Position numbers and translations under genes: made by a program. From assembly GCA_964035545.1 (NCBI GenBank), contig CAXIUT010000134.1:1-64000 (forward strand): a stretch of DNA of 64,000 nucleotides, written 5' to 3'. The notes below the pieces were generated by a model. It made no database searches and was not told where the DNA came from. It saw only the letters and a list, made by a program, of their open reading frames with translations. The first letter of the stretch is position 1. Each line of letters begins with the position of its first letter. This DNA is from Bugula neritina (lineage: Eukaryota > Animalia > Bryozoa). Positions 36,001 through 63,818 of this stretch are shown here, one piece after another.

Positions 36001-38634
36001 GAATATATAGTATCATAGTATTAGAATATATAGTATCATAGTATTAGAATATATAGTATCATACTATTAGAATATATAGTATCATAGTATTAGAGTATAT
36101 AGTATCATAGTATTAGAATATATAGTATCATAGTATTAGAATATATAGTATCATAGTATTAGAATATATAGTATCATAGTATTAGAGTATATAGTATCAT
36201 AGTATTAGAATATATAGTATCATAGTATTAGAATATATAGTATCATTGTATTAGAATATATAGTATCATAGTATTAGAATATATAGTATCATACTATTAG
36301 AATATATAGTATCATAGTATTAGAGTATATAGTATCATAGTATTAGAATATATAGTATCATAGTATTAGAATATATAGTATCATAGTATTAGAATATATA
36401 GTATCATAGTATTAGGATATATAGTATCATACTATTAGAATATATAGTATCATAGTATTAGAGTATATAGTATCATAGTATTAGAATATATAGTATCATA
36501 GTATTAGAGTATATAGTATCATAGTATTAGAATATATAGTATCATAGTATTAGAATATATAGTATCATAGTATTAGAGTATATAGTATCATAGTATTAGA
36601 ATATATAGTACCATAGTATTAGAATATATAGTATCATAGTATTAGAATATATAGTATCATAGTATTAGAATATATAGTATCATAGTATTAGAGTATATAG
36701 TATCATAGAATTAGAATATATAGTATCATAGTATTAGAATATATAGTATCATAGTATTAGAATATATAGTATCATAGTATTAGAATATATAGTATCATAG
36801 TATTAGAATATAGAGTATCATAGTATTAGAGTATATAGTATCATAGTATTAGAGTATATAGTATCATAGTATTAGAATATATAGTATCATAGTATTAGAA
36901 TATATAGTATCATAGTATTAGAATATATAGTATCATAGTATTAGAGTATATAGTATCATAGTATTAGAGTATATAGTATCATAGTAATAGAGTATATAGT
37001 ATCATAGTATTAGAATATATAGTATCATAGTATTAGAGTATATAGTATCATAGTATTAGAATATAGAGTATCATAGTATTAGAGTATATAGTATCATAGC
37101 ATTAGAGTATATAGGGTCATAGTATTAGGGTATAGAGTATCATAGTATTAGAGTATATAGTATCATAGTATTAGAATATATAGTATCATAGTATTAGAAT
37201 ATATAGTATCATAGTATTAGAATATATAGTATCATAGTATTAGAATATATAGTATCATAGTATTAGAATATATAGTATCATAGTATTAGAATATAGAGTA
37301 TCATAGTATTAGAGTATATAGTATCATAGTATTAGAATATATAGTATCATAGTATTAGAATATATAGTATCATAGTATTAGAGTATATAGTATCATAGTA
37401 TTAGAATATATAGTATCATAGTATTAGAATATATAGTATCATAGTATTAGAGTATATAGTATCATAGTATTAGAGTATATAGTATCATAGTATTAGAATA
37501 TATAGTATCATAGTATTAGAGTATATAGTATCATAGTATTAGAGTATATAGTATCATAGTATTAGAGTATAGAGTTTCATAGTATTAGAATATATAGTAT
37601 CATAGTATTAGAATATATAGTATCATAGTATTAGAGTATATAGTATCATAGTATTAGAATATAGAGTATCATAGTATTAGAATATATAGTATCATAGTAT
37701 TAGAATATATAGTATCATAATATTAGAATATATAGTATCATAGTATTAGAATATAGAGTATCATAGTATTAGAATAATTATATAGTATCATAGTATTAGA
37801 GTATATAGTATCATAGTATTAGAATATATAGTATCATAGTATTAGGGTATATAGTATCATAGTATTAGAATATATAGTATCATAGTATTAGAATATATAG
37901 TATCATAGTATTAGAGTATATAGTATCATAGTATTAGAATATATAGTATCATAGTATTAGAATATAGAGTATCATAGTATTAGAATAATTATATAGTATC
38001 ATAGTATTAGAATATATAGTATCATAGTATTAGAATATAGAGTATCATAGTATTAGAATATATAGTATCATAGTATTAGAATATATAGTATCATAGTATT
38101 AGAATATATAGTATCATAGTATTAGTATATATAGTATCATAGTATTAGAATATATAGTATCATAGTATTAGAATATATAGTATCATAGTATTAGAGTATA
38201 GAGTATCATAGTATCAGAATATATAGTATCTTAGTATTAGAGTATATAGTATCATAGTATTAGAGTATATAGCACCATAGTATTAGAATATATAGTATCA
38301 TAGTATTAGAATATAGAGTATCATAGTATTAGAATATATAGTATTATAGTATTAGAGTATATAGTATCATAGTATTAGAATATATAGTATCATAGTATTA
38401 GAATATATAGTATCATAGTATTAGAATATATAGTATCATAGTATTAGAGTATAGAGTATCATAGTATCAGAATATATAGTATCTTAGTATTAGAGTATAT
38501 AGTATCATAGTATTAGAGTATATAGTACCATAGTATTAGAATATATAGTATCATAGTATTAGAATATAGAGTATCATAGTATTAGAATATATAGTATTAT
38601 AGTATTAGAGTATATAGTATCATAGTATTAGAAT
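1..38634. repeat. 23-bp tandem satellite array, left block (consensus TAGTATCATAGTATTAGAATATA), runs off the left window edge
   Basis: ATAGTATTAG recurs every 23 bp from position 1. Common variants are GAATAT/GAGTAT, TATATAG/TATAGAG and CATAGT/CATACT, with rare +2 (TATATAGAG) and +4 (GAATAATTATA) monomers. It ends abruptly at ...ATTAGAAT|CAGTG. Confidence 0.99.
38627..38634 (+). repeat. Left target-site duplication ATTAGAAT
   Basis: Immediately precedes CAGTG and is identical to 58715-58722. Confidence 0.9.
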
Positions 38635-39699
38635 CAGTGCATCACACGGCTTTTACGACTGTCAGGGTCGATCCTCATTTTGCCATTTCGCGATATTAGC
38701 CGCAATAAACAATATATTTTCGTGCGATAACATCGACTGTCTAGGGCGCTACTGTTGACGAATCAGAACAAAGAGAGCACATGAGCGCTGTAAACATGTA
38801 CGTGTTGTTATGGTTACTAATGATGATCTGCTACGTAATTTTTGTAGTAGACAACTCTCACAGAAATCATTAATTTGTCTTTTTATTATTTAGCTAACAA
38901 CTTTTGCCTAGAAAAAAGCAAAGGTAAGGTGGCTCAAGCAATCCTGTATTTTTTTAGAATGTTTTAGCTTAAATTCTGTTTGGTTTATCCTACTAGAATG
39001 TTACCTGCTGCAGCATCAACACTATCATTGCAAAACTATATCTACTTATAACAAAATCTTGATGCACATAGCAAAATTATCTACTTTATTGTGGCGGATG
39101 TGCAAGAGTTTGGAGTCATCTCATCAATTACACATAGCAACAGAAGAACACAATATAGAAATAACAGAAAGCCAAAGACAGTATACCTTTATTTTTAACC
39201 AAAAAAGAATTTTGTTAAACATTATATTGTTTAGTTCACCATAAAAAAACTGATTTTACAAGTGGTTACATCTTTTCCGAAAATAAAAGTGCCATGAAGC
39301 AGCCGAAAATGAAGTCGTCCGCTCACCAGACACCTAAAAAATAATTATGCAACATGATATTTTTAAAATTAAACACAGATATGCAAAAGTCATCACCTAC
39401 ATAATTTTTTATAAATTTAACAAGCTTGTTTAGTGAAAGTGTATAATACAAACACTAATGTTGATAGCGAAAATGCCATGTTCATGCAAGATAGTAAATC
39501 AATATAAATAAGGAGTCATATCATATCTATGTTATATATGTATTCAATTCTGGTTTATGCTTTATGCCTTTAACTATGAGTGCACAACCACTAATCCTAT
39601 TTCTACCAACACCATCTCTACCACTAACAGTACTAACGTCAGAATCAAAAGCAACTTCACCACTACTACTAATAATGTTATTATTTTATTATTATTACT

Positions 39700-39723
39700 T
39701 CTACTACTATACTACTGCTACTA

Positions 39724-39766
<43 letters not shown>

Positions 39767-40275
39767 GCTACTGCTACTACTACTACTGCTACTACTACTA
39801 CTACTACTACTGCTACTACTACTACTACTACTACTACTGCTGCTACTGCTGCTGCTACTACTTCTACTACTGCTACTACTACTGCTACTGCTGCTGCTAC
39901 TACTTCTACTACTGCTACTACTACTGCTACTACTACTACTGCTACTACTACTTCTACTACTGCTACTACTACTACTACTGCTGCTACTACTGCTACTGCT
40001 GCTGCTGCTGCTGCTGCTACTACTTCTACTACTGCTACTACTACTGCTACTGCTGCTGCTACTACTTCTACTACTGCTACTACTACTGCTACTACTACTA
40101 CTGCTACTACTACTTCTACTACTGCTACTACTACTGCTGCTACTACTGCTACTGCTGCTGCTGCTACTACTTCTACTACTACTACTACTACTACTAACTA
40201 GTACTACTACTGCTACTACTACCAGTACTGCTGCTACTACTACTTTTACCACTACTGCCGCCACCACCACTACTA
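39700..40275. repeat. Compound trinucleotide microsatellite (ACT/GCT/TCT)n
   Basis: About 570 bp of ACT triplets interspersed with GCT and TCT. It produces the spurious poly-T, poly-L and poly-S ORFs. Confidence 0.97.
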
Positions 40276-40448
40276 ATATTGTTTCTACTACAAGTACTGT
40301 AAATCTTACCAGCAGCAAGTTATATTGGAAACTGTTTGCTCATTTTATCATTGTATTAGTGCAATAACAAAATGTTTATATTTTAATATAGTCAAACCTT
40401 TTAAAAAACTAGGCTGCTACTTATGAACTAAGAAGTTGTGCTACCCAC

Positions 40449-42489
40449 CTTGATATGCACTCGGCTCCAACACCAAGCAGGTGGTTATGATGCTTCTCCA
40501 CAATGGCCAGGCCATCCAGCTGTCCGATTGTATGCATCTACGTAAAAATTATTGGCATATGGTGCAAGAAATGATTAAAAACCAGATAGGTGTGCTAGAA
40601 TTTATACAGCATAATATAGAGTAAGGTAAAAGAGAACAGACCGTCAAGTGGTACAGCATAGAAACAATTACTAGCTATTATATGCTTTGTAGAAGTTGGC
40701 AAATTGTAGCCCACTAGATATGAACTTTGGTTAGCATTTTATTTTGGCTTTCAGCAACTGCTTTAATCAATAATCTTGGTAAAACCAATATGTTTACAAA
40801 TTAACACCTCCACTAGATAGGTATACAGGTCAAAATATTCCAATTGGTGACATACTAAAAGAAAATGTATATTTATTCATCTTTGAAAGATTGCTAATAA
40901 TTTATAAAACAGCGTCGAAATCACTAAAGTAACAGCGCAAATAAGTTTATTAAACAGCATTATAGGATTGCCTATTACTAGTTTCATGATTTCTATTATT
41001 TTACTGGTTTTAAACATAATATAGGCTGAAAAAGCAATATTAGTTCTCTCACTTTTGCTAACTACATTGCTTGGAAGGCCATCATAATTAGATCAGATCA
41101 AACAAATGTGTTGACAGGTAGACTGGAACAGGCCTAAAATTTGCAAGGTATAATTTAAATTTATCTGGCCTGAAATTGCTGAAACTGACAATACAATAAT
41201 ATGAGAAACAAGCAGGGTTTTTTAATAAAGCTAGCAAAAATAATTCCTCTACATATAATTAACATACAGTCCATACATATAATATATTACTATGTCCAGG
41301 CAGCAGTGCTTGTTCTAGCCAAAAGAAAACTGATTTAATGGCTGATTTTAATGGCCAACAAGAAATTTATGGCGCACAGTGGCATTGTCATATTTTTAAT
41401 ATTCAAAATTACAGTTCTAATCTATCAATCATTTTATCAATACTACTATACTATGATCTACTACTGCTGCTGGTTCTACCACTGCTACCATACTGCTGAG
41501 TAATGCAAGCTAAGTAATTTAAATTGCAATTAAAAAAATTATCGGACTTTCTTTTCTATTACCTGTCCAGTTTAGCATTTCTTTCATCATAGCTTGCCAT
41601 AGTAACTTGAAAATTCACAGGGTTTGAGTTAGACCTATGGAATATACTTACAAGTAGAATGAACCCACAGTTCTGCAATATATCATAAAAACATTCAAAA
41701 TAAAACTATAGGAAAACCAAGTAAATGCTTCTAAGTATTAGTGCAAGTAAAGATGCTATGCAATCTATCCAACAAGCAGCCAAATGTCTCAAAATAAGCT
41801 TCAGAGTTATAAATATAAAATGTTTCCAAATCAAGGCTAGCAACACTTCTGTTGTTGTGATAGCAAATTTTGCTTAATAAAGTAAGGAAACCAGCTTCCC
41901 TTGCATGACTCAATTTCTATTAAAGAAAAATTATACTCTCCTATAATCGCTGAAACACAGGCCTGTCACAAGTACATGAATGGTAAATCTAGATGTTTCC
42001 CTAAAACCATCATCAAAACAGTAAACACACTGCAAAATATTTATTTTTACTTTTTCTGCTCAAACATTTAAATGGGCTCTGCAGGATATGACAAATACCA
42101 AAATAATTCCGCTTTGTGAACTAGCAAATATGGACAAACACCCTAATATTCACGCCAATAGAAAAGTCTACGCATTTTGTGTTCTCAGCATTCTTCCTTG
42201 TGGATGAAAAAAATGGGCAACATGTGGACTGCAAGAATCAAAGCTCAGCACTTTTCATACCTGGAGTTTAAAATGCATGTTGAGTAAAATCTGGGAAGAT
42301 AAAATGGTAAATGAAGATGTATTTGAAATCACAGACCCGGATTCTCCATCGTCAAAACTGAATTTCTTCTGTCTTCACTGGGCTGGTCAACATGCCAAAG
42401 TATCTCATCCACCGCACTCGATTGCATGCATTAATATCAAAAGGAACTCATCCAGCTAGAAGAACTTATATCTAAGGTTTGAGGATGTC
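40449..42489 (-). pseudogene. Degenerate exon-like remnants of a minus-strand gene inside the element, product unknown
   Basis: AG/GT-bounded segments on -: 42489-42261, 41634-41563 (SNSNPVNFQVTMASYDERNAKLDR) and 40537-40449. A further segment ~41916-41731 has a good acceptor and reads KLSHAREAGFLTLLSKICYHNNRSVASL. Stops and frameshifts prevent a continuous ORF. Confidence 0.35.
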
Positions 42490-43849
42490 CTGAAACAAGA
42501 GCTTAAGGAATTTTACATAAAATCCAATCAATTTACCACCTCCCAAATGAAGGCAAAGCATTCATGCAGGATGGGCATTCAACACTGAAAACAATATAAA
42601 GGGATCCATGGCTAGATGTTCAAGACATGAATGCTAAGGGTGTCATGCATATGATCACTGAGATATTTATGACAATCTCTCAATATACCTTAGCATATTA
42701 AATATGCTTGTAGTTATAGCTATTACTATAGTTGTTATATATGCTACTAACTAACAAGCAATAACCGTATTACAAACATAGGTGAATGAGAAAAATAATT
42801 CAATAGTGGTGATATCAGTATGGGTATTATAATTTAGCAATTGGCATAAAAATTAAAAATGATGAATGTAATGATGGTTAAAGTTATTAGATACCTAAAC
42901 TTATACCTATATTAATTAAAACAGTGACTTGTTGAAATATAAATAAATTAATATTCATTAAAACTTCATTGAATTAAAAGATAATTTTGAAGCAAAATGA
43001 ACAGTTAAAATAAATTTATTCACAATAATTTTAACCCTTTATGATCAACCTTAAAATTAAAACTCAAGTATTTGTAGCAAAGTTTTGAATAAAGTTGGAT
43101 TTTGCAACGGTTTGAGATACTTTCACTAGCACTATGTGCATAACTGTATAAGTTTCATCATATTGATACAGTTACATACTCATACTCAAATATATAGTAA
43201 CATTCTCAATAAATCAGGTATTAGTATTGAGATTGCGTTGGTCGAGATAACATCATGGTTACTCACTTATGGTTGTATACTTTAGCTTATACTTCTAGTT
43301 AAATGTACTACTGCCCTATTATTAAACTTAATCTTAGTCTGTCATCACTTAGAAAACATAGTTCAGTCTTGAGGCAAATCAGTTTGAGTGTCGTTAGTTT
43401 CATTACCAGTAGTCATTAGATTTAGTCAGTGTACTTGAAATTTATTGATCAATATTACCATCAAATTTAAGTGACTATTATTATGAATACTATATCCATC
43501 AAATATCAAAAACTGCAAACTTAATAAGTATGATTAAGAAAATCACAGCCAACATGGCGATGATTGAATTGTATGCTCGTGCTATTGAGATTCCTAACAT
43601 AAAGGTTAACCTCACATAATGATTAGATAACAATCATATTCAATTTTTCATTACTGCCATTTGTTAGGAAAAGCATCCAGTCATAATTGCTCCTATGCTC
43701 CAAATAAATAATTCCTTAGCCCCATTTAACAAAAAAACCTTTCCCATCAGGGGTTTCTCACAGGGATGCCAACTATAAACTTGCACAAGTTTTATTTAAT
43801 AGTAAATTAATTTACTTATATAAAAATTATTACATTCACAGTGATACAT

Positions 43850-46400
43850 TGATGGTCATAATATTTTATATATCAATATCATCATTATGATACAATTATC
43901 ACTATTACTATTAGTATTACTATATGATAACTTATCAATAAAACTTCATAAAGTTCATGAAAAACATTAAATATAACAATTTAATCAAAACTAAATCAAT
44001 GCCAAAGGGCAAGGTAGAGTCAAAATTAAATAAGCTATAGGGCGTAGGCTATAAGTATAAGTATAATTATCACTATAAAACTAAGTGACTGATGAGTTGG
44101 TACTTGGTAGCATAAACATAAAATGAGCATAAACAAACATAAACTAAAACACCATTACATATATGATTTATGACCCTTAGGTTTCTACTTTTAATTTTAG
44201 CTTTACCTTGTCTTTTGGCATTGGTTATTGTATTAGTTTAGGTTACACCACTATCAATTACTATGACTATGAATATGAGTGAGTAGCCTTGCCCGTAGAA
44301 CTAGGAGTAGGAGTAGATCACTAGTAGTAGAAGTATGGGTATCGGGGTATGACTATAAGTATAACTCATAGTCACAGTATGAGTATCTTACTGAAAGTGA
44401 TACTCATAAACCTAAAGTGATAATCATAATGATACTCAGCATGACATGTAAGGTGTATGATACTCAGTCTCAGTTATACAGAGTAGAATATCAAACTTTA
44501 AGTTTAACTGCTACTTTAAAGTAGGACTTAGACATCACCATTTATGGGTATGTCATACCGTCATAGACTATAGACATAGTATAAGGTTCTAATACTATAA
44601 GCATAACTATTACTATTAGTATTACTACTATAAGTATAAGTCTTTAAGTTTAAGTATAACTATATTTACTATTGATCAATTTCGATTTGATACTATCACT
44701 ATTAGTATTAGTATTACACTTTACAGTATTACTATTAGTATTAGTTGGTCCCATACTGATAGTGATACTCATATCACTACCATTATGATTATCATAATCA
44801 TTATGATTATGATTAAGAGTACTACAGTGATAGTTATACCCACATTTATGCTGATTACTAATTTAATATCACTCTAATCAGTAACTGTTATCACTATGAC
44901 TATCAGTGAATTATTTATCATTTTATGATTTTATCATAGTCATAATGAAACTGATTGAGTGATACTTATAGTAATAGTTATAGCTATACTGGCAGTGATA
45001 CTGATAGTGATACTGATAGACTTAGACTTAGAGTGAGAGTCAGAGAGAGAGTGATATTCATATTTATAAATATGATTATTATTATTATAAGTATAACATT
45101 AACTAAGAGTAAGAGCAAATGTAATGTCTAATCGTGACATTATAACTATTACCATTAGTGCATTCGTATTAGTATTACTATTAGTAGTAGTATTACTAAT
45201 AATTATTAATCTATTTTTCAATAATAACCATGCATATGCCCTAGCCTATAAGTTTGAGTACGCCTATGGTATTCCTAATTTAAATTGGATCTTTGGGTCA
45301 TTTGATCAAAGGAGCAGCGGACTCCGATTAGGCATTGGACCTTGGGGCGAGGTTCAAGTAAAACCGATATTCGGTCAAAACAGGTCTAGTCTATCATAGT
45401 GGCCAGTAATTTATCTGCGCAAGCTTACTCGCCTCTTGTGTTCATAATAAATTCGGCCTAACTGCTCCGCAAATGGGGCGATAATCATAAGTTTCATAAT
45501 AATATATTATTAGAGACTAATTTAGTATGTACAGTATACACATGTTAGTAATTACAATCTAGTTCCATTCTTCAAGAAAACCCATTACGAATCAGGTTGG
45601 TACTATTGCTATTAGGTTGATAATATTATTAGTAAAACAATGTGCTCATTTTTGATATAAATTATTATTACTACTAGTACAGTAGACGTAGTAGTACTAG
45701 TAGTAGTAGTAGTAGTACAGTAGTACTAGTAGTAGTAGTAGTACTCTAGTTACTAGTAGTAGTACTAGTAGACCTACTAGTAGTTCTGATGTCTAATACC
45801 TTAATAGTTAGTTATTACTATTACTGATTACTCAATTAGTATTACCAGTAGGTAGTAAGAGTAAGTCTAATCTAATGCTGTAATAGATAATTTTTATGAC
45901 TATCACTACGCCCTATGACTATGAGTTGGTATCAAGTTATATTTCATTATTAATTGATTATGCGTTTGTTTACTAAGAAAAATCTAATGGTAGTCTCAGT
46001 CCGTTAACTTATATTTAGTTATAATCACTTACAGTACTGATTCTTTCTCTTTCAATTTGGAACTTCGTTGTTTTCTGTTCCAATAATTATAATCATAATG
46101 CAATAAATTTAAAAGTTACCCAGTGTGAGTGACTAACTAACTACAATTTAGGTTCATTCTTGATGAAAACACTATGAGTATAACTATAAGTATTTACTCA
46201 CTTATAATCGACGCAATAGTAATAAAAAGAAGTTTTGCAATGAATTGGGATCCTAGCCTGGAGCTGGTGAAATTGCATATAGCTAATTAACACGGGGTAT
46301 ATTATGTTTCTGAATATTATTATATGTATTTAACTGTTAAGAATGTAGTGAACAATATTGGTGTATAGATAATTAGGGTTCACTATTACTATGAGTGTCC
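43850..46400. other. Low-complexity TAG/ACT/TGA/ATC-rich zone of micro-tandem duplications around a CpG-containing core (~45220-45480)
   Basis: Many 3-6 bp stutters: AGTATAAGTATAA, GAGTAGGAGTAGGAGTAG-like runs, GATACTGATAGTGATACTGATAG, GACTTAGACTTAG. It lies between the two divergent gene remnants. Confidence 0.7.
45670..45785. repeat. Imperfect (TAG)n microsatellite with ACTAGT/AGTACT palindromic interruptions
   Basis: TAGTAGTAGTAGTAGTACAGTAGTACTAGTAGTAGTAG... read directly. Confidence 0.9.
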
Positions 46401-46505
46401 TAGTCATAGTTGAAAATAAGATGTTCATAATGGTCATTCTCAAAATATAAAAATATATGCATAACCATTAACAAGTTGAAAATATTTGTTTAAAATGATT
46501 TATAG

Positions 46506-47986
46506 ACCATGGATAACGATGAATAAAGCTATTCAGTCTGTTTATCCCAACTTGAGGCTTTGGCAGAAAAAGGTATCGAGGAAGATAAAATCAAAAATGG
46601 TACTGAAACAATTTGCAACTTGAAAAACGATGATTGAAAAGGCGTCAAGAAAGTAAGTGCATGTTATACTAACTATGATGAGTTTTGTAGCTTGGTTTTT
46701 AATCAGTTTTCTCCATACACAATATTGAATTTGTTCAATCTTTTAGAATTGTCACAAACCTGTTAGACCAAGCTGAAAATATAAGTGATGAGTTGAAAAA
46801 AGCTGCCTCAGAGCAATTGACAGGTTATTTTTACATCTATTCTAAAGAAAAGTTCTGGTGAATACATAAATGTTGTTTTTGTACTGGCACAATTTTTGCT
46901 GCACAATTTTGATATGTTCATTTTAGATTTTGATAAACATAACCATCACACAATGATCCTAAATGTTGTAGTACTGTAAATGGCGAAAATGAAAAATTAT
47001 TGCGTGAACGTAAAGTTTCCTACCTAATTTTGTATTTTAGCCACCTAATCAACTTGTAAAAACACGAATAAATAATATTAAGTCCAAATTAGGCTTTTTA
47101 CAGCCAATAAGCACCTGATAATATTCATGTATTTATGGCTCATAGAATGTAATGAATTGTACATACAACTTCTTTATCTCACTTTCAAAATACTGTCAGA
47201 CACCTATATATATGCTAACTTTTTTACTACAATTTAAGGCTGTTTATGTTTTCAGATGTTCAACAATTGTTAGAACTCCTTGAGCAGTATGCCCGACAGC
47301 CTCAAAGAGCACCAATGTATATAGAGGCTACCTCAGTTAAATGGGACAAAATCCGATCAATTCTTCATAGGAATACAATTACTGGCATGGGAACTAGGAA
47401 ACTCTTGATTAGTAGGTAATTTTTAGTAACTTTTATTTTAATTAACCAGCCATCACCAATTTTAGGTGTTGTTACTATTATTTTGCATTTTTTATACCCA
47501 ACAATTTATAATGTGTTGTTTTAAGCTAAAACACTGTTTTAGCTTGTAATCTATGTTTTAGGTGAAAGGCTGTCTCTACTCCCATCAACTTGCCAATTGT
47601 GTAACAATACAATGGTTAAAAAATTTGTAGCTTACACCCTCAAAGTCATCTCTATAATCAATGGTAAATTATTCAAATTGTCCAATCAAATTCTAAAAAA
47701 TATTTGGGTCATTTGTGTTTCAAATAATCGCTAGTATTTTATATTATATTTAAGTGAAGTGAAATTATTGGTCATCTATGTTTATTCAATCAGTTGTCAA
47801 TTATGCATTTATCTGTTACATGATAACTTCTAGAGTATACATATAATTTCTTAACATTTTTGCCTTATTTAGCTATTGTTATAATTTGCTTCTCACAATT
47901 TCATATATTGACACTATCTTTTTTCTAGGGCGCACTGAAACGGTGATTCTCCTTATTGTGAGCTATGCTCATGGACACGTGTTCAA
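46506..47986 (+). pseudogene. Multi-exon Cys-rich gene remnant, possibly the N-terminal part of a CxC3-type KDZ-family transposase
   Basis: Five AG/GT-bounded, phase-compatible exons: 46506-46652, 46747-46823, 47256-47411, 47562-47663, 47929-47986. They splice to PWITMNKAIQSVYPNLRLWQKKVSRKIKSKMVLKQFAT*KTMIEKASRKIVTNLLDQAENISDELKKAASEQLTDVQQLLELLEQYARQPQRAPMYIEATSVKWDKIRSILHRNTITGMGTRKLLISERLSLLPSTCQLCNNTMVKKFVAYTLKVISIINGRTETVI, with a frameshifted PYCELCSW next. There is one in-frame TGA at 46621. More decayed exon-like pieces lie at ~48455-48790 and 49452-49560. The gene structure is well supported; the family call is by eye. Confidence 0.55.
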
Positions 47987-48340
47987 GTGAGTGAAAATTT
48001 TCCTAAACTCAGGCTGTGGCCACTAACTCCCCAAGGAAAAGTATTCGTGACCTTCAGTTATTTGTTACACATCAGCACCTTACAGCATCATTCTCCAACT
48101 TTAAGCATGAAACGCTTGTTCTCTAGTCTAAAGTTCTTGGCAGTATTGGATGGCAGGGTTAATTTTATTAGTTTTTAATGCTTTCGAACACATTTGTTCA
48201 TTTACTATTTGTTCACTGTTAAAATGTAGCATTCATTTATAAGCTTTTTATAATCGTAAATTTGCATGCTAAAAGAAGTTAGCATAATTTATTACTCCCC
48301 TGCACAGTTTTACTGGATGTGGATGCTTAACATCAAAGAT

Positions 48341-48413
48341 GGCTTTTACTGGGCAGTGAACCCATGACTACTGGCTTACTAAACCAGATTTCTAAACCCT
48401 AGGCCACAGCTGC
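48341..48413 (-). pseudogene. tRNA-derived (Thr-AGT-like) SINE head or tRNA pseudogene
   Basis: Minus strand reads GCAGCTGTGGCCTAGGGTTTAGAAATCTGGTTTAGTAAGCCAGTAGTCATGGGTTCACTGCCCAG. It has an A-box-like TGGCCTAGGG, a stem CTGGT/GCCAG around loop TTAGTAA and a B-box-like GGTTCA. The acceptor stem is broken. Confidence 0.55.
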
Positions 48414-50990
48414 TCCTTGTAATGAAATTTATATCTATTTGTATTATATTTTAGACCATTGGAAATGAAGATCATTTCTTTTTAGTCTGTTTGCTAACCA
48501 CTAATAGACTATCAAAAGAACTATGAAACTAGAGGAAAACAAAATAATGTTGTACAAATTTGAAGCTCAGAAAGTGTGGGTAGGTGTTAAATGCTATGAA
48601 AAACCTAAAATCTCCAGTATCTACTTGAGCAGATGTCTAATCTGTAGTGAGCACCATTGTAGTACGTAATCTATTGTTTTGTGTTCACTAAGTTTAAATT
48701 CCGATTAACTATTCCAGAGGCTATCGCAAAATGCTGCTCTCTGATGTAATGCTGAAGAGGCAACCATGCATTAAAACCAGCTGAACATATGTAGGAATAG
48801 ACACATATTTTCATGTGATGTTAGTTGAACAATTATTCAGTGTAGGTTTTGAATTATTTGAGTTCAATGCTGTAAATGTATCATGTTATGTTTCATGTAT
48901 TATTTTTAGTCACTTGTTAATTTTGCATCAAATAACTTTACAAAAATAGTAGTAAATTATTATAATGGTACGCAATATCGTTAAAATGCTACAGTAGCAA
49001 GTGGCAGAGACTCGGCATGTATAGCTAATTTTGATATTGCTAGGTCTCTCTCTGCCTCCCCCCCCCCTCTCTCTAGGCCTCCCCTATTTCTTTCTTCATC
49101 TTTCAATTGAGAGTAAAGCAGCTGTCTTGGTCACCAACTATTTCCCATTCTGTACACTTGGCCTAACCATCTCAGACTCTGCAAAACTTGTTGGTCATAT
49201 TGCCAGAAACTTAAAAATCTGTTTCAATGTAGAAAGCAGACCTGGCAGCCATTGGTTCATTGTTTATAGTTTGATAAAGGGCTTCATAGCTTGTTGATAA
49301 TTGTTTTGACCCTAAAGGTGGCTAATTCATATTTAATGTTGGCTGATCTTGTTTGTATTTTCCCAAAACTTCATAATTCATATTTGGTATTTTTGATTGT
49401 CATTTTAATGGTTAGTGTATAATATTCTCATGTACTATTATTTCTTTTTAGTGTTGAAGGAAAGTTGCCCGATCCATCTTTCACCAGGAAAACTAAGAGC
49501 TCCGATATTTGAATTATAGCATAGAAGAGGTTAGCACAAGGGTTTTCTACACCAGTTCAGGTAAACTGGCTACATGATAATGGTGCAAGGTTTTAAACTT
49601 ACTATCATTCCATTTTGATTTTGCATTATGGGAATGGATGCTCATACATATGGACTTGTGCTTGTGGTTTGCATTTACTTATGGTTGGGGTCTCATCTTT
49701 CCAAACATATTTTAATGAAAAATCAATTTGGAAATGCAATGCTTGGTAACTTAGTGTATAACATCAATCATATTTAGTGAAAATACTTAGTTTTTTCACA
49801 TCTGCTCCAGTTTAACAATATGCTGCTGTGATAGACTTTTTAGTACAGGTCTGAAATCACCTATATAACCCCATTGAAAATGTAAATTAGCATTTGGAAA
49901 TGAATTATTCTTTTAATAATGTGTCACAAGCAGCCAATTATATACATTATTTTCGCTTTCTGTAAGCGTTTTATTAGGTGTTGCATTTTTGGTGTTTTAG
50001 GATTTGAGATTGACTTCAAAACTCCAATTTGCAACATTTTAGGAATGTCATGTCTAAATATTTATTTGTTAGGTTTACCAGGAACGTACCAGATCATTTC
50101 TAGGGGTTATTTAGTGCAATTCTGCATTTAGATCATGTAAACATCCACTCAAGTTAGTGCATTGACAAATTCACAATAGTGGTAAAAACCAGGTTCATAT
50201 TACGTTGTCATTATGTTGCAGCAAGTAACCTCTGATGTAAATTTATGTTTACAACCTATCAATATGCTCTGACCTACAGTCTTTATTGCCATTCAAGGTG
50301 TTCCTCACTGCTGGTCAACCCCATTAACCCCCAACTTACTGCCTACATAGAAGACTGTCTACTCTCCCTTCATTGTACATAGCTCATACAATAATTTGGA
50401 TATTTGCTTTTGCAGATTCATTACATAAAATACCAGCCATTGTGCTAAAAAGTAAAGTTTTGTTGTAGTCTCATCTACTAGTACTCATAGTTCTACCACA
50501 AGTGTTATGTTTTTTATGAAATTTTTGTTTTGAGGTTTTTCAGTTTCACTAATTACTGCTTTAATGGTCATTGTCAATCGATTTCTGGTATAGAAACAAG
50601 TTGTTTCAGAAAAGCTGTACATATAAATTCTTAATTCCCCATGTTATTTTTATTATTGTAGATATCTTGGTCTGCCTCCCAGTTTGCTCCTGATAAGTGG
50701 TGAAGAAATCGGCTGATATGTAGATGCATTAGTGGAGAAATTGAGATAGACTAAGGTCTTTAATTTTCCTAATTATCGCAATAACATAACTTTTCTTGCT
50801 AAGTTTATAACCTGTATAATACATGTTTTTCTCAATTTTCATATCACTTCACTTGCCTCAGGAAATGACACTAACTTTGAACCTAAGCATTCTAAGTGCT
50901 TGAATCTTTCACAGCAAATAATTATTATACAAATTATTCTCAGTCACTGAATAAAGGATTTGTGAGATTCATGCTGATTGTCTTATTTAA

Positions 50991-51131
50991 TACTTCTCTA
51001 TTGCTCTTATAAAAATTACAGCTTTTAATTGTTGAAATATTTACAGTTAATAATTAAAGGGGTGAGCCCATCATCCGTTGTTTAGCCTCAGCATCATAAC
51101 TCTATAGAGGCTGCTAATTCACTGAATACCA
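50991..51131 (+). repeat. ~140-bp segment with an inverted copy at 54604-54746
   Basis: TACTTCTCTATTGCTCTTATAAAAATTACAGC...ACTGAATACCA matches the reverse complement of TGGTATTTAGTGAATTAGCAGCC...GAGCAATAGAGAAGTA. Confidence 0.93.
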
Positions 51132-52465
51132 GGTTATTCTAGTTTATGTTTACATAACTGGTATGACCATATCTTAGTTTAATATATGCAGCTTGAATTT
51201 TTTAAAGTCGAAGAGCTATAATAAAGTTCTAGCTAAGATTTTATAGTTCAAAGCATAATGAATATACTGATATTATAAACTGCTGGCTCAGCCACTTGCC
51301 CAGTTTACATGTTGGTAACCCACTGCAGCATGAACTCTGACGCTAATGTGCTTTGACATTTTAGTTTATAAAACATTGATTTGTGATGTACATTTTGATG
51401 TGCACTTGCAGAAATTGAGGAGCTGTTGATAAAGGTTGATCAATGCTTGGCCAGCCATAATATAATTGCTGTATGAAGATATACTAGTTCTCCCAGTTAT
51501 AGCATGTACATACTTACTAGTAATAAGTGAATTTCCAGACAACCTATTTAATGAAGCAACCGCAAATGATAATAGCAGCAACAAGTGTTGGTAATAAAAT
51601 CTGAATAGGAATTGCACATAGCTGTTAATTAGTTCACACAATGCTCTTATCACTTGAGTAACACAAACAAGTAGCCCATGCCAGCAACTGCTAGTAGGTT
51701 TCAGAACATAAATTTGCTATAGTGGATGGCTTTGGAATGATGAAAGTCATGAATACTCGAAGTGCTACAGTGATCAGCTTACAATTATGAAAGTTTGCAC
51801 ATAATATGATATCTAATTCCTATTTTAATGATGAAATTCAAACTTGACATTCCTTGATATGTTTTCTCTAATATCTTTCTTTGTTTTTCGAAATTATGTT
51901 TATGCTCTTCACAATTTGGTCAAAACGTACACCATTTTTCAAGTTTCACTGCAATTATCTAAATTCTTCATATAGTGGTTCTAGTTACGCTCCTGTGACT
52001 AATTATAACGTTCCTAGTACGTTTGCTGCTCTGTGCGCTATCACAATAACATATAGTACCCTCTCGCACAAATTGGCAATATATTGGATATCTGCCAATG
52101 TAATGTACCCTATTTTACATTAGCAGTTAGTTGCATCTTCTCACCATGTTACAATCTGTTGAAAATGCCTCAGCAAAACATAGTTCTTCGTTTGTTTGGC
52201 AGAGTTAATTTCAGCTAAATCACCTCACTTCACTTTGCAGTCTTGTCAGTAAAGGTCTGTCTATAGTGCAGCAGGTGCACTTTCAGTTTCTCTAACTCAC
52301 ATGTAATTCATTTATGTACATTGTATTCCATAAAATCAATTTAAGGTTTAGCCCATGCAGTGTTCAGTAACTAATTAGTATGCATGTATGTTGTCCTCCT
52401 GTTGAATAATAATATTTCAAAATAGCCATATTTATTATGCATGAGTAGGATTTGCATAAGTTGAC

Positions 52466-52546
52466 AAAAAAATTTGCCACAGAGTAGGGTTGAACCACCA
52501 CCAACAAACACATCACTGGCGCCTTTAACCTCTGGACCACACAGCC
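52466..52546 (-). pseudogene. tRNA-derived (Ser/Leu-like 5' end) Pol III element or SINE head, left-arm copy
   Basis: Minus strand reads GGCTGTGTGGTCCAGAGGTTAAAGGCGCCAG...GGTTCAACCC...TTTTTTT: A box, B box and oligo-T. Confidence 0.55.
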
Positions 52547-52800
52547 ATCATGAATAGTATGAGCACTATATTAGAAACTATCATTACATAAATATTTGGA
52601 GCCTCAAAATATGGGTTTTAATTATTAGGCTGTCAATTAATGTTGACTATAGCAGTGGCTAGCTATTTTCATAAACTGTTGCAATAGTCTCGGGTTACTA
52701 GCAAAGCTAATGGTTTTGAACAAATAACCCAAAAGTTAAAAAATAAGTATAGCTTGCATATTACTAGCTACAAAAACAGGTCTGAAATAGACTGGTAAAG

Positions 52801-52912
52801 CATGCTCTTGCCTATTATTGTAGAGTTTGCAGATGTGCTCCAAAATAAAACTTGAACATGCTCTTGCCTATTATTGTAGAGTTTGCAGATGTGCTCCAAA
52901 ATAAAACTTGAA
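52801..52912. repeat. Perfect 56-bp tandem duplication
   Basis: CATGCTCTTGCCTATTATTGTAGAGTTTGCAGATGTGCTCCAAAATAAAACTTGAA occurs twice. The right arm has a single copy (~56125-56170). Confidence 0.95.
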
Positions 52913-54547
52913 CTGTATGTTATTACATAAGTATTTGTATGCAAAAGAGTGATGGACAAAACTGAGTTTTTGGAAAACAACATACTTGAAGTAAACTTTG
53001 ACAATGGTGTGTTTTTTCTTCATAGACTAGCACAGTTATAGGGCCTATAGCATAACTCTCTAATCATATGAATGTTTATGAAGCCCACAGCTCCTGTAAG
53101 GGTGGCATTGTAATTTGAAACTAAAAATTATGTTGCTGCATTGTGTTTAAGGTATATTATGGAGCAAAATTTGGTGTTGGTAGCCTACCCCAACTGGCAG
53201 TTGTATATAATAAGTACTGATAATAGCAAGGTTAGTATGACCACGTGCTGGCTCTCTGCAGTGTGTATATAACTAACCTCTTGAATAATTGCGCCAATTT
53301 TAAACTCTTGGAAGTTGGCCAAGTTAACAGATCACAGCCAGCCACAGGAGACAAAGCATTACAGCTAGCCATATATTATATACTGATGCACTTGGTAGCA
53401 GAGTGGCTAATCTAATATAGTTCATATTTCAACACCCTTTACTTTGGGAATACAGCCTCTTTTTTTAGGTTTACCTAACAAACTATGAAAATATTTAAAC
53501 TAATATTCTGATAATTTAGAGGTACATTTTAAAAACTAGGTTAATTGCACTTGTTTGCGCAACAACAATAATAAAATATATATTATGCGCAATATGATAA
53601 AAAACACATGATACTATATTATAATATATTATAATGATAATAATATATTATTATAGGTACCATTACTGTATTTAATAACTCTGATGGTTGCCAAAAAAAT
53701 GTATCACACCAATTCTGTAATTACATCAAAGATTATGATAAGAAAATAGAACTAGCTAGGCAGCAGGTTGGAATATAGAGTATCAGTGGAACATTGTTCA
53801 TATAGAACGTAAAGCACCTGGCAAACAGCCAGAAACTGAAAAGCACGACCTCAAACTAACTGTGAATTAAATTGATCAACATAAGCTTTGAGCTAGAATG
53901 CTGTTAAAATTCATATACAAACTGCAATAAAAAGGATTGAATGGCCAGTTGAGATAATTTCATGCTTTGAATATATATTATATTCTAATTGTCACCATTT
54001 AGGTGCATGCAGTAACTATATAAATAATAAAACTGAGCTTGCCTAATAAGTTCTAGTTTACGTTGCTCATATAAATTCTTGTGAAAACATAAACTCTTTT
54101 GCTACGTTTCAACATGAACATAATATGTTCATGTATATGTTCTAGTATATTATACTAGAACACTAGAATACTCGAACATGCTTTATCTGTTAACTTTGAA
54201 ATTGCAGTAACCATCAGTCAAAAAATGCATCTATAGCAGTTCAAGGAAAAAAGTTTTAAAAATAATAAATCATGCTTATATTGTATTAGATTATTTATTA
54301 ATATATTATATATATGTATATAGACGTGTGTGTGCGCGTGTATCTATAAGGACCTATAACAATAATAAACATATAGAAAACACAAAGCCAAAATTGTCTT
54401 CTTTCAATGATATATTTTTAATGATGCTGAGGAAGAAGTTGATAATGCAACTCCTAAAAGCATATGTTGCTCAATGTTTTTTTTTGTATCTGCCGCCAAT
54501 ACTTGTATGTGGTTGCCAACATGTATTTTAAGTTAAATCTTTGCAAA

Positions 54548-54659
54548 TGTTGTTTAGCCTCAGCATATTACAACTCTATTATAGGGGCAGCTAATTCTCT
54601 AAATGGTATTTAGTGAATTAGCAGCCTTTATAGAGTTGTGATGCTGAGGCTAAACAACA
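54548..54659. repeat. ~112-bp imperfect foldback palindrome (MITE-like)
   Basis: TGTTGTTTAGCCTCAGCAT...GCAGCTAATTCTCTAAAT pairs with ATTTAGTGAATTAGCAGCC...ATGCTGAGGCTAAACAACA. Confidence 0.9.
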
Positions 54660-54812
54660 GATGGTGGGCTCGCCCCTTTAATTATTAACTGTAAATATTT
54701 CAACAATTGAATAAGCTGTAATTTTTATAAGAGCAATAGAGAAGTATAATATATGCTTGCTCATGTTTATGTTCACGCATGCGTGTGGATGTCTGTGCAA
54801 GAACACAACATG

Positions 54813-57110
54813 CACAGTTAGTTTAAGGTCACACTTTTCATTTTCTGGCTCTTTGCCAGGTGCTTTATGTTCTATATGAACAATGTTCCACTGATAGCTC
54901 GAACAGGTTGAATGTCACAGGAACAAAAAAAATATGAAAAGATAAAGAAACTTATGTTCTCCAATATACTTTTTTATTTTTTTCAAAAGCCAATTCATGT
55001 TTAAGTTATAGCTTGTTGAAAAACATAGTCCCCCTTCCACATTCTTTTCAATTTATACGCTCCTGACTTGTTATTGTGTCTCAATATGCCTTGTATTTGA
55101 GTGCTTGTTAGTCTCGCTTCACTAACTTTGCCTATACTTCACAAGTGCCAGTGCTGCTGGCTCAAAAGCTAAATGTTATAAACTGTCAGCTAAAACCCAA
55201 TCTTGTATTCCTAGGTTGGTTGGCCTAAATAAAACAATAGTCAAATCATGATTTCATGTTTTAAAAATTTACTCTATTCTAACCTGCTGCCTAGCTATAG
55301 TTCTATTTTTGATGTATAATTACAAAATTTGTGATACATTTTTTTGGCAACCATGTGATTTATAAAATGCAGTAATGGTACTTATAATATTATATTATTA
55401 TCATTATAATATATTATATAGTATTATGTGTGTTTTTATTATACTGCATAATATCTATTTTATTATTGTTGTTGTGCAAACAAGTGCAATTAACCTAGTT
55501 TTCAAAATGTACCTCTAAATTATCAGAATATCAGTTTAGATATGTTCATGCTTTGTAAGGTAAACCTAAAAAAAGAGGCTGTATTCCCAAAGTAAAGGGT
55601 GTTGAACTATGAACTATATTAGATTAGCCACTCTGCTACCAAGTGCATCAGTATAATATTATATGAATAGCTCTGATGCTTTGTCTCCGGTGGCTGGCTG
55701 CGATATGATAACTTGGCCAACTTCCAAGAGTTTAAAATTGGCGCAATTATTCAAGAGGTTACATACTGCACAGAGCTAGCAGTGATAGTAACCTTGCTAT
55801 CGGCTGTACTTATTACAACTGCCAGCATATAAGCTGCATTGTAGAATGCCGTTGGGGTAGGCTAGTAAAACCAAATTCTGCTCTCTAATATACCTTAGAC
55901 ACAATGCAGCAACATAATTGTTCGTTTCAAATTACATTGCCACCCTTACATGAGCTGTGGGCTTCATAAAGATTCATATGATTAGAGATTTATGCTATAG
56001 GCTAGCTATGATGAAAAGAAAACACCATTGTCAAAGTTAACTTCAAGTATGTTGTTTTCCAGAAACTCAGTAATGTCCATTTATATCTCTCGCATACAAA
56101 TACTTATGTAATAGCATACAGTTTAAGTTTTATTTTAGAGCACATCTGCAAACTCTACAATAAGAGCTTGCTTTACCAGTCTATTTCAGACCTGTTTTTG
56201 TAGTTAGTAATACGCAAGCTACTTATTTTTAAACTTTTGGGTTATTTGTTCAAAACCATTAGCTTTGCTAGTAACCCGAGACTATTGCAACAGTTGACTG
56301 CTATCAACATGAATTGACAGCCTAATAATTATAACCCATTTGCACGCAAAATATTTATGTACTCATAGTTACTCATATAGTTGGCAATTTATTAACGATG
56401 ACTGCGTGGTCCAGAGGTTAAAGGCGTCAGCGAGAAGCTGGTTGGTCATGGTTCAATCCTATTATGCTGCATTTTTTTTTGTCAATTTATGCAAATCCTA
56501 CGCATGTATAATAAATATGGCTATAATTGTAAAGTTTTTTTTAACTTTTGTTCAACAGTAAGACAACATACATGCATAATACTTAGCTACTGAACACTGG
56601 GCTAAACTTTAAATTGATCTTATAGAATACAATGTACTTAAAATAATCATATGTGAATTAGAGAAACTGGAAGTACAACTGCTGCACTATAGACAGACCT
56701 TTACTGACAAGACTGCAAAGTGAAGTGATTTAGCTGAAGAAATTAACTCTGCCAAACAAACAAAGAATTATGTTGTGCTGAGGCATTGTCAATAGATTGT
56801 AACATAGTGAGATGATTCAGCTAAGTGCTAATGTAAAACAGGGAACATTATATTGGCAGAAATCCAATAGATTGCCAATTTGTGCGAGAGGGTACTATAT
56901 GTTATTGTGATAGCGCAGAGCGGCAAACGTACTAGGAATGTTATAATTAGTCACAGGAGCGTAGCTAGAACCACCATATGAAGAATTTAGATAATTGCAG
57001 TGAAACTTGCAAAATGGTGTATGTTTTTACCAAATTGTGAAGAGCATAAACAGAATTTCAAAAAACAAAGAAAGTATATTAGAGAAAACATATTAAGGAA
57101 TGTCAAGTTT
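54813..57110 (-). repeat. Right arm of large inverted duplication, with an extra ~374 bp (54897-55270) absent from the left arm
   Basis: 54813-54896 pairs with 53781-53864, and 55271-57110 pairs with 51840-53781. Confidence 0.97.
56400..56480 (+). pseudogene. tRNA-derived Pol III element or SINE head, right-arm copy
   Basis: GACTGCGTGGTCCAGAGGTTAAAGGCGTCAG...GGTTCAATCC...T9. A box, B box and terminator are present but there is no clean cloverleaf. Confidence 0.55.
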
Positions 57111-57214
57111 AACTTTTAGACTTTATAAAATGAATCCCCTGTGCTACAGCAGTGGAACATGGAGGGTGTAAAATTTTACTTATTATGCAACAACGTTCTC
57201 AGAAAATTTTTTAT

Positions 57215-57378
57215 TGAAAAATTAAAAAAGTATATGAAAGAGGAATGCAAGAGCTATCTTTTCATGTAAAATTTGTTAATGTGAGACAAAAACTGTTCGA
57301 GCTATCCCCTGGAAACCGTTTATATATAACATAAAGCAGTGCCTGAATGTGGAAAGTAATGACCTTAAACTAACTGTG
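57215..57378 (+). repeat. Older, diverged third copy, inverted relative to 54813-54985
   Basis: TGAAAAATTAAAAAAGTATAT, TATCTTTTCAT, CTGTTCGAGCTATC and GACCTTAAACTAACTGTG match the reverse complement of 54813-54985 in order. Confidence 0.75.
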
Positions 57379-58714
57379 TGGCACATACTGAGATCGATAT
57401 GTGCCATGAATTGTGTTAGTTTATATGCATGGCGTATGGCATGGCGACATAGTCACAAGAGTTTGTTATGCAAGTGCAGGCTAAAAAATAATATTCTATA
57501 TAATAAAAAAGTGTTATAAGTTATTTTATTGCAAATAAATGGTATGTGATAATAAATTGCATAGCATAGCAAAAAATGCTGCACATGTATAGTTACCACT
57601 AATCAAAAATATTAAATTATATTCATATATTTTAAATAGCATGCATGAATGCAAGATTTTAACTCAAATGTGAAACAAATTTTACTATAGTGTTGTATTT
57701 CAATGGGTTACAGATATTTACTAAAATGTCAAAAATTATAGGTCGACTCAATTTTCATCTGTGCCATTTGCTCATTTTCTAAATTCTACGTAATAATTTA
57801 TATGTGCATCTATAGGTGTGAAATAGAATGGTTACATGTGCCTGTACAACTGGTAAAAGTATAGTAAAACAAGAAAAGAATTAATGTTTACAAGCAAATA
57901 AATTACTATTGAAATTCAATTTTGGGCATTATAAAGCTTTCCATATGCAATATTGTTTTACATTTATTCATATGCCAAAAATTATTTATATATATATATT
58001 TCTTAAAATTATATTTTCTCTCATCAGCTTGAAAATTGTTTTTTTATATAAAAGAGTTTGAGAGTTTATATTAATAAACCAAAAACTGTTATAACATTTT
58101 AATTTTTTACAAGAGTGTATGAATTATGGTGGCATTCAGTCTGCAAAACTATTATTTAATGAGAAGACAATTATGTTTTAATCATGCAGATAGATTCAAG
58201 GAGTTATAAACATATATGAATTGAAATAGAGTGAGAAGACAATTATGCTTCAAGTAAAACTATAAGACCAAGTTCCTATCCAATAGATACAGTGATATGA
58301 GCCTTTCTCTAGAACAAAGTCTAAAAGGAGTGGATTTATATCAAAAAGTCAGACCTGCATCTATTAAGATTTTTCATTCAAAAGTGATAAATTTTGTTAA
58401 TTTTTATTCATAACTCATAGCTTTTGAAATATTTTGGAAGAAAATATTTTTTCAAAATACAGTTACTGCTAAGAATATCTGTATTGATATCACCCCTAAC
58501 TTTATCCACCACTTGTTCTAATTGCTATAATCATCACCTAGCCAATGAAATTAAACTGGCTGTAGCTACAGCCAATCAATTACTCATAACGATTGCGCCT
58601 CGTTAGGCGAACATTGATGACCATTTCTATATAACTCAATACAAAGCCCATTACCACTGATTGACCCGAAGTTCTCTACGACTTCTATAGTGGTATAGGA
58701 TAATAGATATACTG

Positions 58715-58722
58715 ATTAGAAT
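58715..58722 (+). repeat. Right target-site duplication ATTAGAAT
   Basis: Immediately follows ...ATACTG and is identical to 38627-38634. Confidence 0.9.
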
Positions 58723-61700: not shown

Positions 61701-63800
61701 TAGTATCATAGTATTAGAGTATATAGTATCATAGTATTAGAATATATAGTATCATAGTATTAGAATATATAGTATCATAGTATTAGAGTATATAGTATCA
61801 TAGTATTAGAATATATAGTATCATAGTATTAGAATATATAGTATCATAGTATTAGAATATATAGTATCATAGTATTAGAGTATATAGTATCATAGTATTA
61901 GAATATATAGTATCATAGTATTAGAATATATAGTATCATAGTATTAGAATATATAGTATCATAGTATTAGAATATATAGTATCATAGTATTAGAATATAT
62001 AGTATCATACTATTAGAATATATAGTATCATAGTATTAGAGTATATAGTATCATAGTATTAGAATATATAGTATCATAGTATTAGAGTATATAGTATCAT
62101 AGTATTAGAATATATAGTATCATAGTATTAGAATATATAGAGTATCATAGTATTAGAATATATAGAGTATCATAGTATTAGAATATATAGTATCATAGTA
62201 TTAGAGTATATAGTATCATAGTATTAGAGTATATAGTATCATAGTATTAGAATATAGAGTATCATAGTATTAGAATATATAGTATCATAGTATTAGAATA
62301 TATAGTATCATAGTATTAGAGTATATAGTATCATAGTATTAGAATATATAGTATCATAGTATTAGAATATATAGTATCATAGTATTAGAATATATAGTAT
62401 CATAGTATTAGAATATATAGTATCATACTATTAGAATATATAGTATCATAGTATTAGAGTATATAGTATCATAGTATTAGAATATATAGTATCATAGTAT
62501 TAGAATATATAGTATCATAGCATTAGAGTATATAGTATCATAGTATTAGAATATATAGTATCATAGTATTAGAATATATAGTATCATAGTATTAGAATAT
62601 ATAGTATCATAGTATTAGAGTATATAGTATCATAGTATTAGAATATATAGTATCATAGTATTAGAATATATAGTATCATAGTATTAGAATATATAGTATC
62701 ATAGTATTAGAATATATAGTATCATACTATTAGAATATATAGTATCATAGTATTAGAGTATATAGTATCATAGTATTAGAATATATAGTATCATAGTATT
62801 AGAGTATATAGTATCATAGTATTAGAGTATATAGTATCATAGTATTAGAGTATATAGTATCATAGTATTAAAATATATTGTATCATAGTATTAGAGTATA
62901 TAGTATCATAGTATTAGAATATATAGTACCATAGTATTAGTATATATAGTATCATAGTATTAGAATATATAGTATCATAGTATTAGAATATATAGTATCA
63001 TAGTATTAGAATATATAGTATCATACTATTAGAATATATAGTATCATAGTATTAGAGTATATAGTATCATAGTATTAGAATATATAGTATCATAGTATTA
63101 GAATATATAGTATCATAGTATTAGAGTATATAGTATCATAGTATTAGAATATATAGTATCATAGTATTAGAATATATAGTATCATAGTATTAGAATATAT
63201 AGTATCATAGTATTAGAGTATATAGTATCATAGTATTAGAATATATAGTATCATAGTATTAGAATATATAGTATCATAGTATTAGAATATATAGTATCAT
63301 AGTATTAGAATATATAGTATCATACTATTAGAATATATAGTATCATAGTATTAGAGTATATAGTATCATAGTATTAGAATATATAGTATCATAGTATTAG
63401 AGTATATAGTATCATAGTATTAGAGTATATAGTATCATAGTATTAGAGTATATAGTATCATAGTATTAGAATATATAGTATCATAGTATTAGAATATATA
63501 GAGTATCATAGTATTAGAATATATAGTATCATAGTATTAGAATATATAGTATCATAGTATTAGAATATATAGTATCATAGTATTAGAATATATAGTATCA
63601 TAGTATTAGAATATATAGTATCATAGTATTAGAATATATAGAGTATCATAATATTAGAATATATAGTATCATAGTATTAGAGTATATAGTATCATAGTAT
63701 TAGAGTATATAGTATCATAGTATTAGAATATAGAGTATCATAGTATTAGACTATAGAGTATCATAGTATTAGAATATATAGTATCATAGTATTAGAATAT
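58715..63800. repeat. 23-bp tandem satellite array, right block (continuation of the same array)
   Basis: Same monomer and orientation. The variant order continues in register from the left block and the array ends at 63800 against unique, GC-richer sequence. Confidence 0.99.
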
Positions 63801-63818
63801 CCACTAGAGTTGCCCCAC

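Follow-up and report, generated by a model that had tools for sequence, protein, structure and literature searches.

Few eukaryotic DNA transposons are as poorly characterised as the Kyakuja-Dileera-Zisupton (KDZ) elements, and complete KDZ structures with ends and target site duplications (TSDs) are, to our knowledge, described mainly from fungi and from a few fish, with none from Bryozoa. According to the literature, Zisupton and Dileera generate 8-bp TSDs, and Kyakuja has CA..TG termini, no terminal inverted repeats (TIRs) and 7-bp TSDs (PMC12730594). The Cryptococcus elements KDZ1-3 are 9-11 kb in size; KDZ1 has an 8-bp TSD, TSDs and TIRs are likewise present in KDZ2 and KDZ3, and KDZx1 has an 8-bp TSD but no detectable TIR (PMC11343200). 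Animal Zisupton genes consist of 18-31 exons (PMC9297572), so a large, intron-rich element would fit this superfamily. The locus analysed here lies within the first 64,000 nucleotides of contig CAXIUT010000134.1 (hereafter, the window) of the bryozoan Bugula neritina, in which a block of about 20 kb interrupts a satellite array. With a probability of roughly 0.5, this block is an old, immobile and decayed copy of a KDZ cut-and-paste transposon; the KDZ assignment is plausible at about the same level and draws on the sequence of one truncated internal gene.

The satellite is a homogeneous array in which an AT-rich monomer of 23 bp (consensus, ATAGTATTAGAATATATAGTATC; GC, 19%) is repeated in tandem; it occupies positions 1-38634 and 58715-63800 of the window, at least 43.7 kb. 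Recurrent monomer variants are few (AGAAT/AGAGT, a 27-bp variant with an AATT insert, and 46-bp dimers), and identical variants are found at similar frequencies in the left and right flanks, which indicates that one array was split. The left junction reads ...catagtATTAGAAT/CAGTGCATCACACGG... and the right junction ...GATATACTG/ATTAGAATatatag..., with the octamer ATTAGAAT present on both sides of the block (Table 1). When the flanks are joined after removal of one ATTAGAAT, a periodic 23-mer is matched at 117 of 120 positions, and the lag-23 identity over the reconstructed joint is 1.0. According to this phase analysis, one copy of ATTAGAAT is surplus to the 23-bp period. An exact 8-bp duplication and a clean insertion into a satellite monomer had both been proposed in a preliminary description of this DNA, and both proposals are borne out. 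No higher-order satellite periodicity traceable across the junction was detected up to 4 kb.

The block starts with CAGT and closes with ACTG, and the reverse complement of its right end is CAGTATATC. When the two ends are anchored at their outermost bases, their inverted identity is 7/9 (p ~0.003), 16/30 and 24/50 (empirical p = 0.0034), where an agreement of ~28% is expected by chance. The CAGT...ACTG ends with 7/9 inverted identity had been noted before, and they are indeed above the chance level. This identity is independent of the 8-bp overlap; taken jointly, the overlap and the 24/50 identity of the anchored ends have a probability of ~1.5e-4. Two further end features of the preliminary description exist in the sequence but lose their significance. 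The proposed subterminal inverted motif (GGGTCGATC at 38665-38673 and GATTGACCC at 58659-58667) is a chance-level pair, with ~0.9 subterminal 9-mer matches of 8/9 expected by chance according to our own estimate, and TACGACT (38654-38660 and 58677-58683) is repeated in direct, not inverted, orientation, as is one further 7-mer. Neither the 9-mer pair nor TACGACT carries weight, because free local alignment of both subterminal regions (40-400 bp) gave a score below the background median (p ~0.86).

Self-BLAST of the block revealed no terminal direct repeats, and neither of its CA..TG ends carries an A-rich tail. The block was therefore not taken for a long terminal repeat (LTR) retrotransposon, which would have LTRs bounded by TG..CA and a 4-6-bp TSD, or for a non-LTR retrotransposon, which would end in a 3' poly(A) or simple-repeat tail. 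Both ends are rich in CpG: 11 dinucleotides are found in the first 150 bp (top 0.2% of the 150-bp windows in the block) and six in the last 150 bp (top 1.4%), compared with a block mean of 1.2. This richness, which was noticed post hoc in a block that is otherwise depleted in CpG, may mark subterminal binding sites for proteins or DNA shielded from methylation. The junctions are best read as a real cut-and-paste insertion, which we consider highly probable, and the behaviour of a DNA transposon that makes an 8-bp TSD and has hardly any TIR, as described earlier, is retained.

The identity of the element was approached through its coding content. A Pfam scan of 180 stop-to-stop open reading frame (ORF) pieces of at least 38 aa from both strands (E <= 0.1) yielded one credible match, to CxC3 (PF18804) at 47939-48175 (+) (E = 2.3e-4, 21.4 bits); the remaining matches (E 0.002-0.1) were dismissed as noise. 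CxC3 is a cysteine cluster located N-terminal to KDZ transposases. The match belongs to a series of five exons, all bordered by GT-AG as read in the sequence, which confirms the previously reported intron-containing gene remnant. Codon 6 of exon 1, a stop in the window copy, is a sense codon in the related contig L002 described below. It is the single stop across ~210 retained codons, and the retained exons have therefore not been drifting for very long. Homology to the Bugula KDZ genes ceases at ~48241-48246, ~90 bp into the intron 3' of the CxC3 exon. A tblastn search with the KDZ-domain exons of contig L001 gave no match anywhere in the window, and a regular-expression search for KDZ catalytic motifs in six frames gave nothing convincing. 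With the catalytic domain absent, the window copy is at most a deletion derivative. The block contains no long ORFs except translations of the 560-bp (TAC)n microsatellite at 39696-40256, which accounts for their low complexity. Two divergent gene remnants had been announced for this block; one transposase remnant is present, without its catalytic domain, and the two remnants were probably paired ORF fragments in the arms of an internal inverted duplication, in which no protein homology was found.

Upstream of the transposase start codon, at a distance of ~1 kb, stands an isolated CpG-rich stretch of higher GC content (45224-45521; 8 CpG per 150 bp). It gave no Rfam match and may be what remains of a promoter, or else a small, unrelated insertion.

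Searching 1.84 billion representative proteins with phmmer returned 20 matches, all of them short fragments. The best relatives of the CxC3 exon are P0001 (71% identity) and P0002 (60%), the latter with a precomputed CxC3 match. A word-indexed protein search returned P0001 alone or nothing, and none of ten window ORFs (0/10) was present in the protein collection by exact look-up. P0001 and P0002 are encoded on contigs L001, L002/L003 and L008 of Joint Genome Institute (JGI) metagenomes 3300002729 and 3300003318. The contig names carry AY690838, an accession that bryozoan mitogenome studies cite and that we take to be that of the Bugula neritina mitochondrial genome, and these contigs are presumably Bugula neritina host DNA. 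The window aligns collinearly with all of them, and with L001 over 46743-48246. In comparison with L001 and L008, both exons and introns are conserved at ~70% nucleotide identity; in comparison with L002, conservation is confined to the exons, which points to a spliced gene under past selection. L001 and L008 remain 82% identical past the breakpoint for ~700 bp more, into an exon with a HIDGNMKLYKYK motif, and these paralogues therefore represent a multicopy family. In L001, the exon with HIDGNMKLYKYK is followed by three exons that match PF18758 at profile positions 55-99, 120-165 and 165-203, in this order. The Bugula CxC3-KDZ contigs thus resemble the window copy in exon order, in their ~70% identity and in the same short interspersed nuclear element (SINE) family nearby, but L001 goes on into KDZ-domain exons where the window copy ends after the CxC3 exon, and none of these contigs reaches a recognisable element terminus. 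Judging from these alignments, what the window holds of the KDZ transposase gene is its 5' third, and the gene belongs to a family that is multicopy in Bugula neritina, with members that look intact.

A metagenome scan revealed four more distant loci (L004-L007; ENA assemblies ERZ17400xx) with 41% identity in the CxC3 exon and without element boundaries. They fall into two sequence versions that are 80-88% identical to each other, which indicates related CxC3-KDZ families in at least one other host. On the minus strand of L002, retroelement-like ORFs are found at 338-1718, upstream of the KDZ gene, including a weak Asp_protease_2 match, and the 5' end of the L002 KDZ copy may therefore be interrupted.

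If the block is a KDZ element, a KDZ transposase, acting in cis or supplied by another copy, would have cut ATTAGAAT in one monomer with an 8-bp stagger; the CA...TG ends of the element would have been joined to the target, and gap repair would have duplicated the 8 bp. During decay, the transposase gene would have kept exons 1-5 (from the N-terminus to the CxC3 zinc cluster) and gained the stop at codon 6, while everything from the next intron on, including the catalytic KDZ domain, would have been deleted or replaced. Expansion of the microsatellite, insertion of retroposon fragments and inverted duplication of a 1.9-kb segment would then have followed, presumably in this order. The outer termini and the KDZ remnant are taken to belong to the same element, and the TSD length of 8 bp agrees with the family of the gene inside the block. 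In view of the single stop, the element would seem to have been nearly TIR-less from the outset rather than to have lost its TIRs through decay.

A number of observations weigh against this KDZ origin. The CxC3 match taken alone is under the Pfam gathering score (21.4 vs 26.6 bits), and PF18758, the domain that defines the superfamily, has no match among the 180 ORF pieces. The remnant begins 7.9 kb from the left end of the block, its own 5' boundary was not located, and the interior is a mosaic with unrelated repeat fragments, so that the KDZ piece could be a nested passenger. No second copy with the same termini was retrieved by the protein searches, by the metagenome scan or from the fetched loci; the TSD is that of a single copy, and the assignment of the termini to the KDZ family is tentative. 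The terminal 400-1600 bp gave no significant similarity to the Bugula contigs. Weak AT-rich matches of the termini to L002 4300-4460, seen when eight loci were compared, proved on inspection to be low-complexity alignments, and the search of the Bugula contigs for a CAG...CTG pair flanked by 8-bp repeats gave one hit, in low-complexity DNA of L002, which is about the chance number. Moreover, an 8-bp TSD and a CAGTG end suit a hAT element equally well. For hAT, 8-bp TSDs are the norm, the terminal consensus is YARNG, short imperfect TIRs are typical, and in animals these elements are far commoner than KDZ elements. The outer element might accordingly belong to a different superfamily with 8-bp TSDs, for instance as a hAT-like transposon of the non-autonomous kind, and carry the KDZ fragment as a nested or captured passenger. 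The left end CAGTG agrees with YARNG, ATTAGAAT matches the hAT target nTnnnnAn with T at position 2 and A at position 7 (as do 2/23 of the monomer 8-mers), and the KDZ remnant is internal, distant from both ends and cut at a non-natural point. The right end (CAGTA as reverse complement), however, departs from YARNG at position 5, and neither an internal KDZ terminus nor an internal TSD was seen. No trace of a hAT transposase (BED finger, RNase-H-like core or C-terminal dimerisation domain PF05699) was detected in the same ORF pieces, although a non-autonomous member would lack them anyway. A 20-kb hAT shell would also have required a complete large KDZ element to insert and then to disappear for the most part. 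A single large element that suffered an internal deletion is more parsimonious than a small foreign one into which a KDZ element inserted and was then mostly lost. The hAT-like origin is the main alternative but is considered unlikely.

The other two explanations dispense with transposition of the block as a unit. Any block within a 23-bp repeat gives an apparent duplication of 0-22 bp, and a length of exactly 8 bp has p = 1/23; for this reason, the duplication is weaker evidence than it appears. Together with the mosaic interior, the background-level local alignment of the ends and the lack of a convincing TIR past the first few bases, this would fit an ordinary repeat-rich island between two satellite stretches, or DNA captured during break repair, in which the overlap and the CA..TG ends are coincidental. 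Such a coincidence has to be set against the joint probability given above (~1.5e-4), the outlying CpG content of both ends, the same array variants on both sides, the perfectly periodic reconstructed empty site, and a duplication that has the very length expected of the family whose gene lies inside. It is somewhat less likely than the hAT-like origin. Long satellite arrays are also difficult to assemble, and a unique contig could have been misjoined into a collapsed array; a misjoin, however, is not expected to give an in-phase, exact 8-bp duplication, CAGT ends in inverted orientation and one and the same array to the left and right, which makes an assembly artefact very improbable.

Table 1. 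Features of the inserted block and its borders (window coordinates; the strand of the block is the orientation of its transposase remnant).
Feature	Position	Strand	Basis or remark
Left TSD copy, ATTAGAAT	38627..38634		Satellite sequence; read directly
Inserted block	38635..58714	+	20,080 bp; GC 32% overall (30-34%); CpG observed/expected 0.33
Left terminus	38635..38684	+	Starts CAGTGCATC; weak in-register inverted repeat with right terminus
(TAC)n microsatellite	39696..40256		~187 copies; Tandem Repeats Finder; ORF list
5'-truncated tRNA-derived SINE copy	43655..43787	+	86.5% identity to L002 4723-4846
Low-complexity repeats	44300..45800		18-bp, 12-bp and 3-bp periods; upstream of transposase gene
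CxC3-KDZ transposase gene remnant	46509..48157	+	5' third of intron-rich gene; Pfam, collinearity
Exon 1	46509-46598 (approx.)	+	ATG; stop at codon 6
Exon 2	46747-46823 (approx.)	+	
Exon 3	47256-47415 (approx.)	+	
Exon 4	47562-47653 (approx.)	+	
Exon 5	47929-48157 (approx.)	+	CxC3 domain
Breakpoint	48241..48250		End of homology to Bugula KDZ genes
Left arm, internal inverted duplication	51834..53778	+	Self-BLAST
Right arm, internal inverted duplication	55272..57116	-	Self-BLAST
Right terminus	58665..58714	-	Closes ..GATATACTG; CpG-rich
Right TSD copy, ATTAGAAT	58715..58722		Read directly

The rest of the block is made up largely of repeats. The region 41886-42750 (+) may be a degenerate C-terminal tail of ORF2 of a long interspersed nuclear element (LINE); its three-frame translation contains the motifs ..LHWAGQHAKV.. 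and ..LRFEDVLKQELKEF.., and it gave no Pfam match and no homologue in the protein search. The SINE copy of L002 (4639-4852) is full length, starts with a tRNA-like head and is flanked by a separate 13-bp TSD, TATTAGTTATTAA, which shows that the SINE insertions in the window and in L002 are independent; that both belong to one SINE family speaks for a bugulid origin of the window. For the same reason, 43662-43785 was ruled out as a part of the KDZ 5' region. The segment 44589-44746 is weakly similar to L002 3533-4022, which has an equivalent position upstream of exon 1.

Further downstream, 51834-57116 forms a 5.3-kb near-palindrome of two 1.9-kb arms around a spacer. The arms are 82% identical over 1991 aligned columns with gaps, and ungapped blocks are mostly 91-94% identical. 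The spacer holds a 112-bp perfect-type palindrome (54548-54659), and additional inverted matches join 50984-51131 with 54604-54753. This duplication was rejected as a nested element with long TIRs, as no TSD is present at its outer borders. A hairpin match at 54546-54659, attributable to chance, was all that resulted from tRNA scans of the block and from Rfam scans with either the gathering or the E-value setting. The 20-kb size claimed initially for the element thus holds for the block (20,080 bp), but that of the element itself is inflated by the microsatellite, retroposon fragments, low-complexity DNA and the 5.3-kb duplication.

At the far end of the window, the satellite array stops abruptly at 63800 (...ATTAGAATA/TCCACTAGAG...) and is followed by GC-rich (~52%) sequence up to 64000. 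A minus-strand open frame of 64 codons (63807-63998), the stop codon of which adjoins the satellite, resembles the 3' end of a gene that belongs to a second inserted element; it gave no Pfam match and is similar neither to the block nor to any of the fetched loci.

If the KDZ reading is correct, the precise ends of this bryozoan copy would provide a starting point for defining which termini and which target sites characterise an animal CxC3-KDZ family and would aid the annotation of large heterochromatic insertions in new bryozoan assemblies. A bolder proposal is that an uncharacterised bryozoan CxC3-KDZ lineage produces very large, nearly TIR-less, non-autonomous derivatives that are mobilised in trans, prefer ATTnnAAT and use satellites as a safe harbour. 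The quasi-palindromic candidate site ATTnnAAT occurs once per 23-bp monomer; the proposal is tentative and appears doubtful at present.

Among known systems, non-autonomous hAT elements resemble the block in the 8-bp TSD, the nTnnnnAn target, the CAG-type ends and the short imperfect TIRs, but they are usually several-fold smaller, and the block has no hAT protein remnant and a right end that deviates from YARNG. Elements of the Zisupton/Dileera type (fish Zisupton, Zisupton-1_PGr and Cryptococcus KDZ1-3) share the 8-bp TSD and the large size with the block. In their transposase, which in animals is encoded by many exons, the KDZ domain is preceded by an N-terminal CxC zinc cluster, whereas the window copy is devoid of the KDZ domain. 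The cysteine cluster is CxC3 in the window, CxC1 in Cryptococcus KDZ1-3 and CxC4 in the Zisupton-type KDZx1. The TIR of Cryptococcus KDZ1 is 236 bp, compared with ~9 bp recognisable in the block; KDZx1 of Cryptococcus deneoformans and Kyakuja of Laccaria, like the block, have little or no TIR. Kyakuja also shares the 5'-CA..TG-3' ends, but its TSD is 7 bp vs 8 bp here, and both KDZx1 and Kyakuja are fungal, 6-10 kb in size and coding-competent, whereas the window copy is from an animal, 20 kb long and dead. The previously suggested relationship to KDZ is supported by the CxC3 match and by the collinearity with the KDZ-bearing L001, but the novelty implied by an undescribed family was overstated, because the features that seemed exotic are published hallmarks of the KDZ superfamily. 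Most likely, the block is a new KDZ-type copy, dead and rearranged, in an under-studied phylum, rather than a new class or mechanism.

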